DNA of 62,202 nt, the filler included, from Choristocarpus tenellus KU-1152 (Eukaryota > Protista > Phaeophyceae), in NCBI GenBank assembly GCA_964200185.2. It is 7 parts of 7 records of this genome, joined end to end, with 100 filler letters (N's around TTAATTAATTAA, not from the genome) between each part and the next. Parts side by side here need not be neighbours in the genome. Positions count along the whole stretch, not along the records: positions 32,735 to 41,363 come from CAXNAD020004514.1; 6 more parts are not named here. One strand, written 5' to 3'. The notes beneath the pieces were generated by a model that was not told where the DNA came from, ran no database searches, and saw nothing but the letters and a program-made list of their open reading frames with translations. Both the position numbers and the translations under genes were made by a program. Position 1 is the stretch's first letter; every line of letters begins with the position of its first letter. This document shows positions 1,790 to 41,363 of the stretch, piece by piece.

Positions 1790-2300
1790 CCACTCGCCTG
1801 GAGAAGAGGTGCACACTTTCTGTGGCAAGTTGCCTAACGTTGTAGTGGACTGGACTGGGCACAGTGCCGTCAAAACAATTCAAGGGTGGTTAGTAGAGGG
1901 ATATTATCGGTTAAAGATCTGTCTGTTTCGAGGGTTAACTTGCTGGGGCTTGGGACAAATTTTTGTACACTCAAAATATGGACCAGCGCTGTTCATCAAA
2001 CACCAGGTTCCATTTGCTTCATTATGTCCGATTGTCCTACACCATGTTCTGGACAAAATTTTATGCTAAAGAAAGTCGTTTTTTGTGCTGTCCAGTGCCA
2101 TCACGTACGCTGTTCTTCTAGTTTCCCATTAAATATCTCACTCCTTCAGGGATGAGGGTTCGCAATTGTTGTGCGACTTCTTTGAAGTAGAGTAAATTAC
2201 TGCTTCGAAATATTTGTTTGGGTGAATATATCCTGAGGTGATTACAGTCAAGGGACCTTTTCTCGTGAGAGACACCTAATACGGAGATCGACATACAGTG
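1790..2300 (-). pseudogene. Possible very decayed Tc1/mariner transposase fragment
   Basis: A minus frame with stops reads HKKRLSLA*NFVQNMV*D..SKWNLVFDEQRW, resembling the mariner K-x-R-L-x-F-A...V-x-x-D-E-K-W region around the first catalytic Asp. Confidence 0.3.
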
Positions 2301-3488
2301 AAATGGTGTGATATTATGCATTTAACCCCAACGATACATATCTCTACATACACCATAGTTGTATTTCTCACTTACATTGTACCGCCAACTAAACCTCTAC
2401 CCCTTTTTTTTTATTATGCCCTCTCTGACAATTTGGACATGTGCCAGAGGAAAACTAATGAAAACTTTTCACGTGTTTAAATAATCCCTAAAAAGTAGTT
2501 TTGTATTCATCACCGAGCATTTCATTTTTGTATGAGCGATGTACCACAAATACATGGTGCGTATCTGTATCGTCTCACACACAATATCAAAAATGTACTC
2601 AAAGCATGTTACTATCAACATTATCCTTATTCGTGTAGTAGTAGTAACAGTTGGTTATATCCATTCAATGATATTGATCTCAATTTGATAATCAGGTCAA
2701 CGTAATTATTAATGTTATCATGTACCTCCACTCATCTTCAATTGCAAAGCCATTCCTACCATCACATACCAGTACTACCACAGGTGAACGGTGAAAACAC
2801 AGACAACATGGAAGAAGGTGATCACCAACACTTGCATCCCATCTGTGCTTGCTCCAAAGGGTAAAAATTGCCTTTGTTCCTGTGATAAAGATACAAATTT
2901 TCTCTTCAGCAAACAGGTTATGTCCACATCCTTACCTCCAACGATAACCAGGAGAATATAGACATTGAAAGGGATTTTAACATGTTACTATGCTTCTAAT
3001 TAAATATTTGAAGTACGTGTCGTACACTCGCAGATGATTACAAAAAATCATGCTTTGATCATTCCAAAGCTTTACAGCTCTGTCATAGAGCTTGATTCAA
3101 AAGCAAAGAAAGTCAAAACAACAAATATATTGAGTCTCAAGATTCTGTTCTATCAACAATGAGACACATTCAATCAACAAGTGCTTGCACCATCTACGGT
3201 TTTAAACACACACTCAAAGAGGAAATTTGCACACACACACAACACACAAATATTACAATTTGCTTGCAGGTCCCAAGGCACGAGCATGCATCTTATGTAG
3301 TCTTTCTAAATCAAAAGCGGGTGGACCTTCCACTTAAACCTGGCACGCCTTCACATTGCAGCTAAGCCAGTAATAGATGCAGTGCCTGTTCACAAAATTT
3401 ATCTATCTTGGTAAAAGGTTCAAACCTTCAACCTCCCACCTTTTCTGCTAGTATTGTTTCTTGTTGCTTGGCAAGGACCAAGCAAGTC

Positions 3489-32734: not shown

Positions 32735-33880
32735 GGGTTCCCCACGCGCGTATACTGCTCGCGCCAGTCAAAGCGCGGGAAGAAATACTCGCGCTACTCG
32801 CCTGTAACAGATAGTGAGTTCACCAGAGAAAATAAAAATCGGCTATCATACACAGACTCTGCCATACACTTCCACTTATTGCCCACGAACCTGTTCTATC
32901 AACCACACACTCGTCTATAGATATGGGTGTAGGCGTTCACTAGTTTAAGTCACACATCAATTCTATATATTATATCATTATCATGACCTCTAACTTTTGG
33001 AGATGTGTTAGGGGAATAACCAATGAAAACTATTTACATATCAGAAAAATCCCTAACAAAGTAACAATTAATATATATATAAGAAAGACATTAATCTATT
33101 TGCTATTTTAAAATAGTAACAATTGTCATAAATATGAAAACATTAATCTATTTGCTATTTTACTGCCACCTATCCTGTAGCACTATGTATTTTAACAAGA
33201 TAGGGAAGTATCCCAAGAATTTAACAAACCCCTCCTTTCCCATCTCATGAATTCTATATAATATATTGACCAAATTTGAAAGTTCAATATTTTTTATGAT
33301 ATTTTATTTATTTGTATTATTATTATTATGCCCTCTTGACATTTTGCATATGTGTCAGGGGGGAATCCAATGGAAACTATATATATATGTCGTTATTAGC
33401 CCTAAAGAAATAAAATATCCTAAACGTAAGAACACTATAAAACATTGTAAGTATGGAAACCACTAATCAGTTACTTCACCACTATCTAATATTGTACTAC
33501 TGTCTTCCTTAGCTTCCCATCTACCTACTCCTGCCTACCATGTGAGTAGCCAGCTCATCCAGGAATTATATTAATTTAGTGAACCTTTCAACATTATTTT
33601 TTTATCTAGGATTAATTGGAACTACTTGTCATCATCAAGTCCTCCAAATCATATTGTTGATCATATCATAATAATATAGGACTGACTATATGGGAAATAT
33701 CCAGTATGAATTTATTTGTGAAAGTTGTGTTGTTTGTTTGATAGAGTGGTCTACGGAATAATTTATACCACCTCTACCTACATTGTTACACACTTCATCA
33801 ATATAGTTTTCTAAACCTGTGCAGGGTAGGAAGTGGTTCTACAAGCACTCTAATAATATCTGGGGGAGGTGGGAGGGGGA

Positions 33881-34962
33881 ATGGAGGGCTGTCACCTGCT
33901 TAGTGGGTTTTTCTCATGGTGCGTGCAAGGTATGCTAGGATGCACTGCATTGAGCATGCTCCTATTCAAGCGATGTAAGGAGAGGCCTAGAAGGCCATTT
34001 AAGGTCTGGTGCATGGACGCATCGAAGCAGGTAACATCGAACGGATTCCGTTGTTCTTGTACAGTATTGGTGGATTCAAAGAGCGTCAACTTGTTTGTCC
34101 GTGCCTTTTCGTTTACTGGGCTGAGGTTTGTCTTTAATCCGGTGGTACATCGTACAGGCTATAGGCGGACTTTTCGTCCACGTTTGGAACTTGGTATTGG
34201 CCATCTGGGTGACTTCGCTGTCGACAGGGATGGAGCAGGCTCGAGATGAGTGCGCCCTCTACTTCATCAACTATGGTGCGATGACCTAACTCGTCACCTT
34301 GCGAATTTCCTTCAGAATTTGATTACATGATGACAACTAGTATCCCCTCAACTAATACCGCATCCACCAATGTTGATACATAAACCCTCATTACGTTTTG
34401 TGGCAGACATAGTTGTTAGGATTTCATTCTCTCCTAATATCAATTGTATTACACTCTTTGCAATGAGGGGGTGTCCAACATTTTGGTACTGTCTTCTCAT
34501 TCCCCTCTTTTTTTGCTACCCTTGTCTGTTGTTCGGGCAGTGTTGGATATCACTATCGGCACTGTATCTGTGTGGTGGCTGTTGTTGCTGCTCCAGCATG
34601 TGGCGGTCATTCTTAACTTGCCAAGTCTTCAGCGTAGTGGCGATTACGGGAAGCCACCCTCGTGCTCGATTTACCTCGCACAACTAGTGGTTTTTCTTTT
34701 CATCCTTATGACGTACAAAACTGGTGCTACTTTGTTTGTGGTGGCATTGGCGGACCCCATAGAACAGATTGGGGTCTTCTTGATTGGGCCATTACAAAAT
34801 TATCCTGTTTTAGAGTTGGTGGTCGTTTTGGTTTTTTGCCCATGGATAATAAATTCTGTCCAATTTTGGGTGCTCGATTCCATTATTATGCATCAGGGTC
34901 TGTCAGCAGAGCACTACGAAAAGATCAGTGACACCCATAGAGGGGGTCGTATTAGTGTGTAA
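33881..34962 (+). CDS. STIMATE/TMEM110-family multi-pass membrane protein; join(33881..34030,34158..34275,34541..34962), 229 aa
   Basis: CHLLSGFFSWCVQGMLG..LSMLLFKR.KERPRRP.KVW.MDASKQ, HVWNL, DECALYFINY-VLDITIG, SGDYGKPP, LELVVVLVFCPWIINSVQFWVLDSII. GT-AG junctions with matching phases. Confidence 0.9.
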
Positions 34963-37900
34963 TTATGGCTATGTACTATATAACTCTAGAGAAAACATGT
35001 TTTGAATTGGGTTAACTCTTATAATGAACCCCACCCCCAATCCACATCGCTCCCTTTATCCCTATGGATCCACCAGTGTGCTTGGAGAAGATAACTGAAA
35101 GTAGGTGCCCAGGTATCAGATCAGCACATGTGTGAGCATCTAATTTGTATATAAACTCCAATGGGATCAAAATATGCAATCAGTTAAACCAAAATCTGCC
35201 AGGTGCAGGTCAAGTTTTTTGGAAAAATCTTTCTTGTCGATGCTGAATCCTATTTCTACTCAACAAGATTAACAAACCATTCGTGACCCATACATCCAAC
35301 ACACAACTGTTTTCTGGTGGAGAATGCCAGTAACTCAAGAAGCTTCAAGTGTGAAGCTTCTTTGTCGTGCTATCCTCAGATGGGTTTCATAGACAACTCA
35401 TATTTGATGCATCCGCTGTACAACATTTCAAGGTAAACCAAGAACTCACTCCTTAAATTAAAGACATGTGCATCATTGTCCCAAGGATCAATAATAGATC
35501 ATTCAGTCAAATGTTTTCACCAATTGTCTGTGAAAGTTGGGAACAGGTACTACGTACCTCACTGCATGAAAATGAAATGCTACGCTTCTTCAAGAGGTTC
35601 AGTTCAATGGTATCTCAGAAAGGTTGATTCTTACCTAGTATTGGTTTTAAGTATAGGGATTAAAATGTGACACACAGCCAACAGAACACACCAAAGGGAT
35701 CTAAGAGCTAGTGTTTGATGCCTTAGGTGTTACTGAGAGAATTTTGATCATTTTCTTTCAGTGCCTACATCTAAGCCCTAGGTGCAGACAAGTTCAAGCT
35801 TGGCCAGCTAACACACAAGTAGTTGTGCCGGGATCACACCTTCATGGAGCTAGGATTGTTATTGGATGATGAGACCCTTGTCAACATTATGGCCTTGAGA
35901 ACTAGAGTGCCATTCTACATGGAAACAAAATTTGTGGTGGGTGCTTATTTTTATTTCTAGGATGCTGGAGTGCATAAACTGCTCTGTACAGTCCACCTGT
36001 GACCTCATGTGGATGAGACAGAAGTCAACAAACCTGAGGGTTGGTAGGTATTTTCATAATCTTCTATTGTCAAATGTGAAACGTTCCTTGGGGTGGGTAA
36101 TTCTGCTGACACTGAAGCCTAAGTGTACACTTTGTTGCCCAGAAACAGCATTTGAGATATCACATGCAGACTATGAGCAGTAACTGTATGATAGGAGCAA
36201 GTCAAGAGCTCCAAGATGCCACACCAAATACACCATCAAATAATGGAAACGCCATGTAGCGGAAACCATGATGTCCTACTGTCATGGGTAAGTTGGTTGT
36301 GAGATGTTTTTGAGGACTTCTACGGAAATATTGTTTGCTTGGGGGTAATTCACCCATTTCTTGAGTAGAATTGGAACATAATTGGGACATCGACACAGAG
36401 GAAAGCTCAAAGTGTTTTAAAGGGATTTTGAGCAACATGTGGACAATTTGATCTTTGTCTTTTGTGTATCTCAACGATAGTGAGAGGAGTCCTCCTTTTC
36501 CAAGTTCGTTACCTTTCCGTATGGACAGGTTAGTTGTTGAATCAATTTATCGACCTGAGGTGTGATTTATTATTTCAGATTTGACAATTAATTGTGAGAC
36601 CATAGAGTCTGAACTATGGAATGTGTCTGCAGTGTGGAAAATATGTCATCACCTGTAGTCAGAATTCAAATAGTACAAATCTGAAATGTTTTCAATTTTA
36701 AAAATCAAATTCGAGTGGGGAGTCATGTGTATGTGCTCATGTTGAACACATCACAGAGGGTACAATAATGGCAGCACTGTACAAGTGTGAAGCATCAAGC
36801 ACAACTTCTTGTCTTTCATTGGAGTGAAAATAATCACATCGATCTGTTGTTGGATCCTTGTAGGGCTATATTTATATTGAGCAAGAATATGGAAAGCCTC
36901 AAGAGATTCAGTCGGGGATCATTGCTTTCGATGGGTAAAGAATAAACTTAAGAATAAACTTAAGAATAAACTCAAGGGTGATGCTTAATGGCGTACATTT
37001 GACAATATGTCCTGTTATACTCAGACATCGATGTTTGATGCATGTCCTGCAAATATCCTCAGAGGTAGTCTTCAGGCATACCCAACTTTCTAGTGGACAA
37101 ATGTTGACTGTGGATCTATCAGCAATTATGAATGCCACAGGTTAGTTAGGACCATTTTTTGTCATCTTGGAGGTAAATTTGTTGAGCTACAAACAACATT
37201 ATCTAATACCAGCAAACTTGTCTGATATTTGAACCAATAATTATTCTGACACTCACTTGAAAGAGGAATGTGAATAATGTTGCCTGCCTTATGGAGGACT
37301 AGGAGATAAGCACTCCAATATTGCTTTATGGTGTGTAGTGATCTTATAATGGACAGTAGGGTGTGTGGCAGTCATTGTGTCTACAAATTTACTCCTCAAT
37401 GATGCATGACCAAAATGAATACTAATAATTATTACCTTCACTATCACAAAGCAAGGAATGTTTGTAACTATTGACATACCTCCCCCTTTCCATTCTACTT
37501 GTATTGATAGTATTGTACTGCCATATGCTACCCTTCGCTTGTACTGTAGTACTTTGAAGGTACTGGAAAAAAAATTGGATTGGTTCTACCTGAAACATTT
37601 TGAATAGATTTTTCGCACACAATTTAGGGGATCAAACCTACCCAGTCAAGGGCAGTGATCTATTTTGGGGGCACTATGGTTGCATGTCTAGAAAGCGCAT
37701 CTAGAAAGCACACACACAAGGCGCAAAAGGTGCTAATGGTGCTAATGGTGGTCCATTCAGCAACTAAAACAAAACAAAAAATTCTTGTGCAATTGACATG
37801 CTCCTTTCCACATCACAGCAATAATAATAATAAGGAAGGAATGGTATGCTCACAAAATCAACACTCTAGTGATCTTCCACATGGAAAAAGTCTCTGTGAA

Positions 37901-39281
37901 CACCCTCCCTGGATCAAACAACTACTATAATATGAAGAGTATCTAGTCTTGTGTATCCTTGAATTCGACCATAATCAGTGCAATTGAAAAATGAAACTCA
38001 AATGAAACAAGGAAATTCTCCACTCAATAAAATGAAAATCAAAAATCAAAACAGCAATGCCTACTGCTGCAAACCCACCATCAGCTCTACATTCTAAAAG
38101 TAAGATAAGGCATCTACCATCAAATCCGCACTGTGCCCTGTAAATTGCTAAAAATTGGGTGCCAGAATCCAAAGTAAAGTTAGTACAAATTTGGCATTGA
38201 TCCTTGAGATTCTAAAACAAACAACTCTGCTCATGTATCATATAATAGTAATCTGATCATGATGCTATAGCACTATTATATGACATGAAATAACACAGTT
38301 TACCAAAGACCAGCTGGTGGAAATATCAGTCCCAAGAAAATACCCAGGGACCATCATGGCTCTACTTATTGATAGAATTAAAACAAGTGATCATCTTGAT
38401 CTGAACACAACAAACTCTGGGTAGATGTCATATTTTGTGGGACGTATAAATGCACACAGTTGACTACAGTTGGTCCATACCAAGTGAACAAGATCACTGG
38501 ACAGAACAGAGTAACGCCGGGTTAGACAATCAATTGATAGGTCACAACGAAAAGCCAGTCTTGCAATCCTCTCAAGTCTAGAATGTTATTTATATTATCA
38601 ATACATCAAGTTCTGCTTCAAGTTGAAATTGAGTATGGATCAATATGACTGGATGGGAGGATGATAATATCTACATGATAATTCCACAAGAAAAAAATCA
38701 TGGAATGGTCTTAATTGACCACTTAATCACTAGGGTGTTGCAGGGTTGGGAATCCAAACCATGTGTAACTACCATGTAGCAGTACTATGAATACTGAGAG
38801 TTAAATTGATTAAAAAAATTATTGGAGGTTTGAATCCAAACCATTTATGAGGGAGCATATATATGTTCATTTAGCATCAAGTTATTCAATATCCTCAACT
38901 ACAATTGAATCTTGCACAAAAGGATGAACCCGGAGCACTGCAAGGTGATTAGGACCTTCAGGTTGGAGGGGTTCCAACTCTATTTAAAGATTGTTGAGAT
39001 AGTCTTTTTTTGTGTGCTCTTTTGCCAATACCACGTCCACTTTGATCTGATCCCTCAGAGAATTTTAAGCCTATGTTCTGCAGAACAAAATGTGAATGAA
39101 GAGTTGCCAAGAGCAACATTGTGCAATCATGTAATAAATTATTCTGAATAAAAATTCTATTTCAGGCCTGTCTCTGCATGTGGCGTATGTGGGTACACAA
39201 TTCTGCCATAACTTTCTATCTACTCCAGGGTACTACTGAGTTAGTATTACTACTGAATTAATAGCCTTCACATGCTCATAG

Positions 39282-39630
39282 ATGGGCAAGGTATGTATGT
39301 ACCTGCAACCCACTGAGGACTCCCCCAAACCCCCACTTGCACAGAATAAGCATTACATTATGAAGGTGATATTCCTTGCAGCTGTGGCCCACCCTAGGAA
39401 GCTCTCCAACATGGTGTGGTTCAATGGGAAAATCGGGATCTGGCCAATCATGGACACCAAGGGCACGATCCAGCAAACACTGCCCCAAGGACACCAAGGT
39501 GCTTGTGCCAGCCACAGTGGATGAGGAGAGGTATAAGAAGCTAATGATCGAGGATATCATCCTGGCAATTAAGGTCCACATGCCTGGCCTAGAAGGACGT
39601 AACATCTTCATTCAGCAGAATGGGGCAAAG
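39282..39630 (+). mobile_element. Decayed Tc1/mariner (DD39D-like) transposase, 5' piece of the catalytic core
   Basis: YLQPTEDSPKPPLAQNKHYIMKVIFLAAVAHPRK..WFNGKIGIWP..RSSKHCPKDT..VPATVDEERYKKLMIEDIILAIKVHMP..IFIQQNGAK matches KVMFLAAVARPR...FDGKIGIWP...IQQDNAKPH. One frameshift. The match stops abruptly at 39630. Confidence 0.85.
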
Positions 39631-40181
39631 TGGGTCTGGTATTGGGATGGGATGCCCTAATTTTCGCTGTAAGGTATTTGAATGGGATATTAGAGATATC
39701 AACCATTGTGTTGATCGTGTTCACAAAAAAAAGCTATTTGAAAGATATTTACTGGGATAAGGATAGCACATGTAAATATAAAAATATTTATATTAACTAA
39801 AGTAACTAATAATATATATATATTGCTTGACTGGCAATTCTGGGTAATAAAGCACAAGGAGTTTTGAAATACTTCATCCAAGATCAGCACTGGGATCAAA
39901 GTGTTACTGTTTCACTCTAAGGATAATTTCTCCATTTACTAGCTCGACCTGCTTTTAAAATATCAATTGACTGTGTCTTTGTTACTTTCAAAGGGATCTA
40001 TTAGTTTTCATTTGTATTCACTGTATTTGTAGTATATATATTTGTAGTATAAATGTATTTGTAGTATATTACCAGTTTCTACTATCCTGGCAGTCACTAT
40101 TTGTCCAAATGGGGCATTAAAAAATAAATTGACAATAAATCATGATTTTAACGCCAAGCCCTTAACTTTATTAGGAGTTTT

Positions 40182-40270
40182 TTTAATAATGCAATAATTA
40201 GCATACCTAAACCTACTCCCAATGCTAGATTACAATTTTTTTGTATTGCTTACGCTGGAGGAGGAACAAG
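40182..40270 (+). pseudogene. N-terminal fragment of an NRPS/PKS-type thioesterase (GrsT/type II-like)
   Basis: FNNAIISIPKPTPNARLQFFCIAYAGGGT matches the thioesterase start consensus PxPNPNARLRLFCFPYAGGGAS. Confidence 0.7.
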
Positions 40271-40274
40271 AACT

Positions 40275-40430
40275 TTGGAAAACACTGAATTATTGGTTGA
40301 ATAGTTACCTATTGCTGTCTTTTGTGGAAGTGTTACAATAGTTTCTATTATTATGGTGGTATTGCCAAACATTTTTACAACTAGGAACCTACAAAAATAT
40401 AAACTATCGGCTTTTGAGTGTGGATTTGAC
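40275..40430 (+). pseudogene. nuoA: NADH:quinone oxidoreductase subunit A (NuoA/Nad3) N-terminal fragment, Rickettsiaceae-like
   Basis: LENTELLVE*LPIAVFCGSVTIVSIIMVVLPNIFTTRNLQKYKLSAFECGFD has the ECGF loop motif and a premature TAG at the conserved Tyr of EYLPI. The NxELLxEYLPIAxF...LPN pattern matches Rickettsia NuoA as I recall it. Confidence 0.85.
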
Positions 40431-40431
40431 A

Positions 40432-40560
40432 GGAACAGATGATTTGCGTAATACTCCCACTTTAGAACTTACTAATATATTGACACAAAATGACAAAAAA
40501 ATCATTGCGTATGACCCTGAAGAAGGGATGATTTATATTGATAAATATTATAGCGATATA
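40432..40560 (+). pseudogene. ugd: UDP-glucose 6-dehydrogenase C-terminal domain fragment
   Basis: GTDDLRNTPTLELTNILTQNDKKIIAYDPE matches the Ugd motif KxGTDDxRxSPAxxIxxxLxxxGxxVxAYDP. Confidence 0.75.
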
Positions 40561-40564
40561 GATT

Positions 40565-40766
40565 GTGTTTTCTCTTCATTACTTGCAAATTTAGTCTCAC
40601 CAATTTGTACAAAATTTCCTTAATTATTGACAATAATTCGTCCATATTGGTTTGGTTTGTCAAATTTAAATGCCAAAGTGGCAGCTTTTGAATCTTCTTC
40701 TTCTATGTGATCAAAAAGATCACTAAAATATATATTAATTAATTTGTGCATTATCCCCACAGACTA
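40565..40766 (-). pseudogene. glmU: GlmU (UDP-GlcNAc pyrophosphorylase domain) internal fragment, Rickettsiaceae-like
   Basis: The minus strand reads LVCGDNAQI (frameshift) SDLFDHIEEEDSKAATLAFKFDKPNQYGRIIVNN*GNFVQIGETKFASNEEK, matching GlmU LYGDxPLI...VTLxFxxxNPxxYGRI...GxFxxIxExKxAxxEEK. Confidence 0.8.
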
Positions 40767-41050
40767 GAGTAAGAGGCCAACCCTTTAGAATGATACTCTT
40801 TCCTAAAGCAACTGTTCAATAATGTTTAATATTGTTTTACTAATAACAAAATTTTACTATTAGGAATGCTTGTATTTAGCAGTTTCTAGTGGATGATATC
40901 AGTTTTGCTTTTAATATTATTTTTCACATTTCAGTGGAATATCTATATTAAAAAGACCATACAATTCTACTAATATTATTTTTAGTTGGGAGTGAACAAG
41001 GACAATGTGTTTTGTTACAAAGGGCTTGCTTATAATGTTTTACTAATAAC

Positions 41051-41158
41051 ATGGGGGTGACCAACACAGAGGAGCTGGTAGAGGCCACAATGGAGGCATT
41101 TGATGTGTACCTTTGGGAGACACTAGAGTGCATCTGACAGAGTCTCTTCACAGTCTAG
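41051..41158 (+). mobile_element. Decayed Tc1/mariner transposase, 3' piece resuming after the bacterial insert
   Basis: MGVTNTEELVEATMEAFDVYLWETLECI*QSLFTV is the same C-terminal motif as YNADTLERVWQSLF in the 8474-8707 element. Same strand as 39282-39630. Confidence 0.75.
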
Positions 41159-41159
41159 G

Positions 41160-41337
41160 CCCAAAGTATCTGGGGGGCGGGGGGCAGTCTACACCAGGGT
41201 GTCCATTTGTCCCAAAACCAGGAAAAGTGCACTTACATTATCCATTCGACGTATGCAACCACATCACTAAAAAATTGTGACATGAAAAAATTGACCCCAA
41301 GTGGACAGTAGCCATCACCCCACCCCGCTACTTTTAC
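41160..41337 (+). mobile_element. MITE family C copy, directly after the mariner remnant
   Basis: CCCAAAGTATCTGGGGGG...GTCCATTTGTCCCAAAACCAGGAAAAGTGCACTTACATTATCCAT matches 27528-27700 and 1-76. Confidence 0.78.
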
Positions 41338-41363
41338 CTTATACTATTACTCTTATGGTTCCA

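Follow-up and report, generated by a model that had tools for sequence, protein, structure and literature searches.

A patchwork of decayed bacterial gene scraps, at least two of them from Rickettsiaceae, interrupts a nuclear Tc1/mariner-type transposase copy

Results

We found that an AT-rich insert of 1,420 bp (positions 39631-41050) interrupts a decayed, multi-copy Tc1/mariner-type transposase in eukaryotic nuclear DNA. It carries four directly abutting scraps of bacterial genes in the order type II thioesterase (+), nuoA (+), ugd (+), and glmU (-), which together cover ~625 bp, while the other 795 bp (56% of the insert) showed no match above shuffled controls. The locus is single-copy and nuclear, its glmU and nuoA scraps are of Rickettsiaceae type, their adjacency is not native to such bacteria, and they have decayed neutrally. 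The window, i.e., the whole 62,202-nucleotide stretch of DNA that was analyzed, was filed under Choristocarpus tenellus KU-1152 (GCA_964200185.2); its usable part was 32735-41363. An earlier note on this DNA had described the four pieces, their order, and both orientations, and all four were confirmed, with the thioesterase as the weakest. The piece size given there (90-200 bp) was too narrow, as the glmU scrap is 247 bp long.

The insert was linked to host DNA at host depth, and a STIMATE gene of three exons (~33881-34030, 34158-34275, and 34541-34962; + strand) lay on the same contig. The exons were separated by GT-AG introns, and the last one matched Pfam PF12400 (E 7.5e-25). Searched exon by exon, with a joined spliced model left out, the gene at 33881-34962 (+) was apparently intact, with introns of ~127 and 265 nt, and is a possible marker for host identity. 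Upstream of it, at 32935-33388, AT-rich local duplications were observed (109 nt at 71% identity and 57 nt at 84%). From 35000 on, CpG was strongly depleted (observed/expected 0.2-0.3) and TpG/CpA was in excess, which fits a methylating host.

The transposase was recovered on both sides of the insert. Its left part (39290-39630, +) was decayed, with a frameshift near 39465, and ended abruptly at the insert; the right part (41051-41155, +) picked up later in the catalytic domain, as seen from contigs of other copies and from translation. The summed contig depth over the left part was 2,300-3,300, compared to 20.6 in the unique flank, indicating a multi-copy element. Contigs of other copies linked 39559-39585 to 41049-41072 without the insert, and these copies had one extra base at 39465-39468 relative to the present one. 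Nearly all changes between this copy and the others were G to A or C to T, with CpG decay at 9 of the 17 such sites checked. The distance of this copy from its family amounted to at least 19 of 220 listed sites (~9%), a figure from which the 85% likeness cut-off hides more distant copies. The transposase stretch deleted at the insert is presumably ~150 bp, and the subfamily is one we take to be DD39D-like. Look-alikes in the Atlas were eukaryotic Tc1-like DDE clusters with scores of 0.91-0.92; the nearest cluster was mostly oomycete, which, on four records, may give only a hint of the host. The transposase flanks gave no Pfam or PDB match, a search for terminal inverted repeats found none, and no intact transposase relative was found in viral contigs. 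Further right, the transposase was cut off by the end of a hugely abundant repeat, possibly a MITE, at 41160-41363 (summed depth 3.6e5, ~17,000 times that of unique DNA).

Next, the read support of the insert was analyzed. The locus was present in two short-read runs of 2024 (X1 and X2) from one organism; a third run (X3), from another organism, contributed no reads. The assembly may itself have been made from the sample of X1. A polymorphic 12-bp tandem repeat at 36938-36976 (3.2 copies) had one unit fewer in X2. The left junction was crossed with 0 differences by a 323-bp contig in X1 (39507-39829) and by a 419-bp contig in X2 (39494-39912). A further X1 contig of 1,226 bp spanned 39831-41056, thereby including all four scraps and their joints, at a depth of 25 against 20.6 in the flank. 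This contig differed from the window at four sites, indicating allelic variation. The depth over the insert in X1 was 22-29, that is, single-copy, and the insert was likewise single-copy in X2; no second copy of any scrap at 85% likeness or more was found in either run. The GC content of the insert was 0.30, compared to 0.50 and 0.51 in the two transposase flanks; an AT-rich block had also been described in the earlier note. A junction was counted as bridged if a contig reached 31 bases past it. While the left of the two junctions to be checked was thus crossed in both runs, the listed contigs of X1 and X2 at the right junction both stopped at 41056, six bases beyond it and inside a run of five Gs. 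A length variant of this five-G run would account for these contig ends.

The glmU scrap provided the clearest evidence of the donor. It occupied 40568-40814 (-) and corresponded to nt 239-484 of a short, 243-aa Rickettsiaceae GlmU; a weak gapped extension to ~40875 is possible from the alignment. It was damaged by one stop (40620-40622) and a 1-nt frameshift near 40737. At the DNA level, the scrap was 79.8% identical over 242 nt to its relatives L124/L125 (E 2e-56) and 77% over 247 nt to L122; the protein identity was 74.5% over 51 aa. As the search route biased the set of GlmU sequences toward Rickettsiaceae, six outgroup GlmU were added, and the scrap showed 59-61% amino acid identity to its clade but 21-27% to these six non-Rickettsiales sequences. 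In the resulting 51-row tree, which contained no named Megaira GlmU, the scrap grouped with P0160/P0223/P0224 (support 99/100), and this group sat in a short-GlmU clade (100/100) that included sequences named Rickettsiaceae and Rickettsia. The row of the scrap in this tree is short and long-branched, but the DNA match at 79.8% gives independent support for its placement. The short scrap gave 0 matches when searched against 1.84 billion representatives. By these comparisons, a Rickettsiaceae origin of the glmU scrap can be regarded as shown, its clade having been encountered in this analysis solely in assemblies of metagenomes and sequencing runs. One metagenome contig (L045-L047) repeated a single 15.3-kb Rickettsiaceae block, from glmU to the nuo operon, three times, which is probably an assembly artefact.

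The nuoA scrap (40272-40428, +) covered about codons 2-53 at the 5′ end of the gene and contained one stop at 40302-40304. It was 70.5% identical to the Rickettsiales MAG UWPOB_RICK2 over 146 nt (E 4e-13). A pattern derived from the window found relatives in 38 genomes, in which Rickettsiaceae were mixed with other Alphaproteobacteria, and full-length relatives were then used; by DNA identity to the scrap, UWPOB_RICK2 and Rickettsia ranked first among the 38. The scrap showed 56-63% amino acid identity to unnamed Rickettsiaceae, compared to 48% to the NuoA of Ca. Megaera venefica. In the tree, a 100/100 branch set the scrap together with Rickettsiaceae; its placement among them was approximate, closest to unnamed sequences (63%), and it did not join the clade of Ca. 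Megaera venefica (99/91). Plant and fungal ND3 scored lower against the scrap than bacterial NuoA; stramenopile nad3 was absent from this tree. A homologous-protein search with the short nuoA scrap alone gave no candidate. The tree and the identities thus support a place for the nuoA scrap inside Rickettsiaceae.

The other two scraps could be assigned to gene families. The ugd scrap (40429 to ~40565, +; the right end is approximate) is an internal piece of the C-terminal domain of UDP-glucose 6-dehydrogenase. It matched Pfam PF03720 (UDPG_MGDP_dh_C) at E 5.7e-5, and we regard this family assignment, made from the domain match, as certain. Its best tested homologue was a ugd from a Wolbachia WO region (40 bits, E 3e-4; the others reached at most 35 bits), and it was 50% identical to the Wolbachia gene and likewise 50% to a deltaproteobacterial gene. 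The thioesterase scrap (~40190-40271, +) resembled the N-terminal part of a type II (NRPS/PKS-associated) thioesterase, with a best tblastn E of 7e-3 and matches annotated as thioesterase or alpha/beta hydrolase. Its identity was 48% over 27 aa, and the best tested match was an Alteromonas plasmid gene (71% DNA identity over 56 nt). This assignment is the weakest of the four. The comparison sets for ugd and thioesterase contained no Rickettsiaceae sequence, and the identities are to be read at family level. The Rickettsiales origin claimed for all pieces was borne out by trees and DNA identity for two of them, glmU and nuoA. As Megaira genomes carry NRPS/PKS systems (PMC10132079), a Rickettsiaceae source for the thioesterase scrap is plausible by analogy.

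The rest of the insert consisted of two AT-rich stretches without gene match. The first, 39631-40189, was at single-copy depth, contained a short triple repeat at 40022-40069, and gave no match above chance to Pfam, NCBIfam, PDB, phage, plasmid, or fetched-locus sequences; the GC content of its segment 39631-39770 (0.37) was above that of the rest of the insert. The second, 40815-41050, carried a 16-nt exact repeat (40833-40848 and 41036-41051) that ended at the right junction. The longest such repeat in 2,000 shuffles was 12 nt, although the end point was picked after seeing the repeat, which resembles the product of templated end-joining. The 795 bp outside the scraps showed nothing above shuffles in 1.19 Mb of fetched loci, and an Rfam search gave no match. 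Several candidates were rejected: an inverted homology between 38985-39044 and 39626-39751 scored 48 against a shuffle maximum of 58, an FTR1 match at 39816-39866 was due to chance, and Bacillus plasmid and phage DNA matches of 32-49 nt were AT-rich chance hits.

We then compared the order and decay of the scraps with living relatives. There, glmU was flanked by yebC and polA, and nuoA by flgB and nuoB; in some relatives glmU was 7 kb from nuoA, and in none did they abut. The neighbors in the insert differ from these, so the patchwork does not represent a gene order native to such bacteria. Between the living relatives L122 and L124, the differences by codon position were 3, 1, and 18 of 82 each, that is, mostly third-position. 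In contrast, the glmU scrap, at sites conserved in three relatives, differed at 19/79, 12/81, and 10/61 sites by codon position. Differences across all codon positions, together with the stops and the frameshift, indicate decay without selection, and therefore the insert is not DNA of a living bacterium. The scrap reads as the decayed DNA of a bacterium near the P0160 clade. The apparent decay of the insert was 15-24%, a range inflated by the donor's own distance from P0160, and no less than the family distance of the mariner copy. By this measure, the mariner copy does not appear older than the scraps. By arithmetic, both copies of the 16-nt repeat would come through 15% decay unchanged with a probability of ~0.005. 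Such a perfect junction repeat is thus unlikely to outlast the decay, and the last joining step may postdate the transfer.

Discussion

We consider it fairly probable that the locus arose when endosymbiont DNA was built into the nuclear genome as a patch at a double-strand break, yielding an insertion without function. In this view, a member of the P0160/P0223/P0224 clade of Rickettsiaceae would have resided in cells of the host's ancestor, and its DNA would have been set free and broken to pieces of ~80-250 bp. End-joining repair would then have linked several pieces from distant loci with one another and with the ends of a break midway through one mariner copy, part of the transposase being lost and replaced by the insert, which would afterward have decayed without selection. 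In this sequence of steps, we infer that all scraps had one donor, that it lived inside host cells, that repair took this route, and that all of this happened in one event. Rickettsiaceae are obligate intracellular bacteria. Because of this, and because non-collinear clusters of plastid DNA in nuclear genomes (PMC12863932) are analogous, the use of bacterial DNA as repair filler would be the best-supported mechanism. Against this explanation stands that a Rickettsiaceae donor was tested for only two of the four scraps and that more than half of the insert is without assignment; the contig ends at 41056 and the apparent age of the scraps relative to the mariner copy also weigh against it.

The age of the patchwork might be divided differently, although we think this unlikely. 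Longer Rickettsiaceae insertions could have decayed in the nucleus first, and template switching or deletion collapse could then have made the patchwork; in the template-switch version, break repair in the mariner copy would have taken short stretches from the older insertions. The second-position decay of glmU (12/81), which equals or exceeds the distance of the mariner copy (~9% or more), and the right-junction repeat, beyond anything in the shuffles and with its low chance of survival, speak for such an order of events. However, neither run contained a second copy of any scrap at 85% likeness or more, and the donor's distance from P0160 and the 85% cut-off blur the age gap between insert and mariner copy. 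An origin from several donors appears improbable: glmU and nuoA would be from Rickettsiaceae, and the thioesterase, ugd, and the rest from other bacteria, e.g., eaten or surface bacteria, from viruses, or from host DNA. The Alteromonas match of the thioesterase, the equal identity of ugd to the Wolbachia and the deltaproteobacterial gene, and the higher GC at 39631-39770 agree with it. Nevertheless, these are family-level identities from comparisons that lacked Rickettsiaceae thioesterase and ugd, NRPS/PKS systems do occur in Megaira genomes (PMC10132079), and the directly abutting scraps are alike in their low GC (0.31-0.37 each).

Three further origins, namely an assembly chimera, contamination by a symbiont alive today, and insertion of mitochondrial DNA (nad3), are largely refuted and seem very improbable. 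The right junction falls short of the 31-base standard, and Rickettsiaceae contigs do turn up in algal assemblies (P0135, Ectocarpus sp. 12). On the other hand, stops, frameshift, and flat codon-position decay are incompatible with a living genome; the gene order is non-native, the depth equals that of the nuclear flank in two samples, and alleles differ between the runs. Of the points made in the earlier note against contamination, the nuclear location, at single-copy depth in two runs, and the neutral decay were supported; the stops and frameshifts described there were recovered as well (one stop in nuoA, one stop and a 1-nt frameshift in glmU), and no gene is complete. A mitochondrial source could draw on the absence of stramenopile nad3 from the nuoA tree, but plant and fungal ND3 fell below bacterial NuoA. 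Moreover, glmU and ugd are not mitochondrial genes and, by established knowledge, are absent from mitochondrial gene sets. The nesting of glmU among bacterial short GlmU sequences also argues against a plain NUMT, in line with the earlier note.

The preferred reading, an endosymbiont insertion patched into a break, has close published precedents, and the locus works like the fossils in Volvox and nematodes (PMC4324946, PMC4046930). In Volvox carteri (2015, PMC4324946), Rickettsiaceae DNA likewise occurs as truncated pieces in a non-animal nucleus, with a non-native join (a 412-bp 16S piece abutting murB) beside a transposon and multi-copy host DNA. The Volvox pieces, however, are longer (75-768 bp plus the entire ddlB gene), show partial synteny, and have hardly been damaged (PMC4324946), whereas those observed here measure 80-250 bp, are heavily decayed, lie in both orientations, and trace to at least three or four separate loci; the donor here is of an unnamed clade, and the locus is known from sequence data. 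Wolbachia transfers in nematodes (Dictyocaulus viviparus, PMC4046930; Wolbachia-free filariae, PMC2882956) are similar in that short inactivated Rickettsiales fragments are joined to host DNA, and they have been read as fossils of a lost symbiosis. There, the donor is Wolbachia and the transfers reach ~1 Mb, compared to one locus from Rickettsiaceae here. In non-collinear and mosaic NUPT/NUMT clusters (reviewed in PMC12863932), fragments from distant donor positions also meet at one nuclear site, although their donor is an organelle and not a bacterium; such clusters have been explained by repair of a double-strand break through end-joining, in which flanking DNA was lost, or by later rearrangement (PMC12863932). 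Rickettsiales belonging to the Megaira group have previously been recorded in a brown alga project (PMC10132079). Besides, an undamaged Rickettsiaceae-type short GlmU (P0135) is recorded as a protein of Ectocarpus sp. 12 on a 605-bp contig (L141, GCA_964200275.2), which probably stems from a symbiont and was not removed from this brown algal assembly.

Compared with these precedents, the locus differs in the fineness of the shredding, the decay, and the unnamed donor clade, and would differ in the host group if that is confirmed. Tentatively, the host may be an ochrophyte or other stramenopile, and the insert one among many such fine-grained insertions whose source was an uncultured lineage of Rickettsiaceae, a reading that we regard as possible but doubtful. 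If true, a genomic fossil would document heritable infection by Rickettsiales in stramenopiles for the first time, as a limited literature search found no such report, and the locus would name a host type for an environmental clade seen only in metagenomes. No new host function is to be expected from the insert, as every scrap is broken. Instead, the sequence evidence indicates that DNA of an uncultured Rickettsiaceae clade once reached the heritable nucleus of its host, where symbiont DNA would have been used as repair filler, as organelle DNA is. From fossils of this kind, the former host ranges of Rickettsiales can be traced beyond animals.
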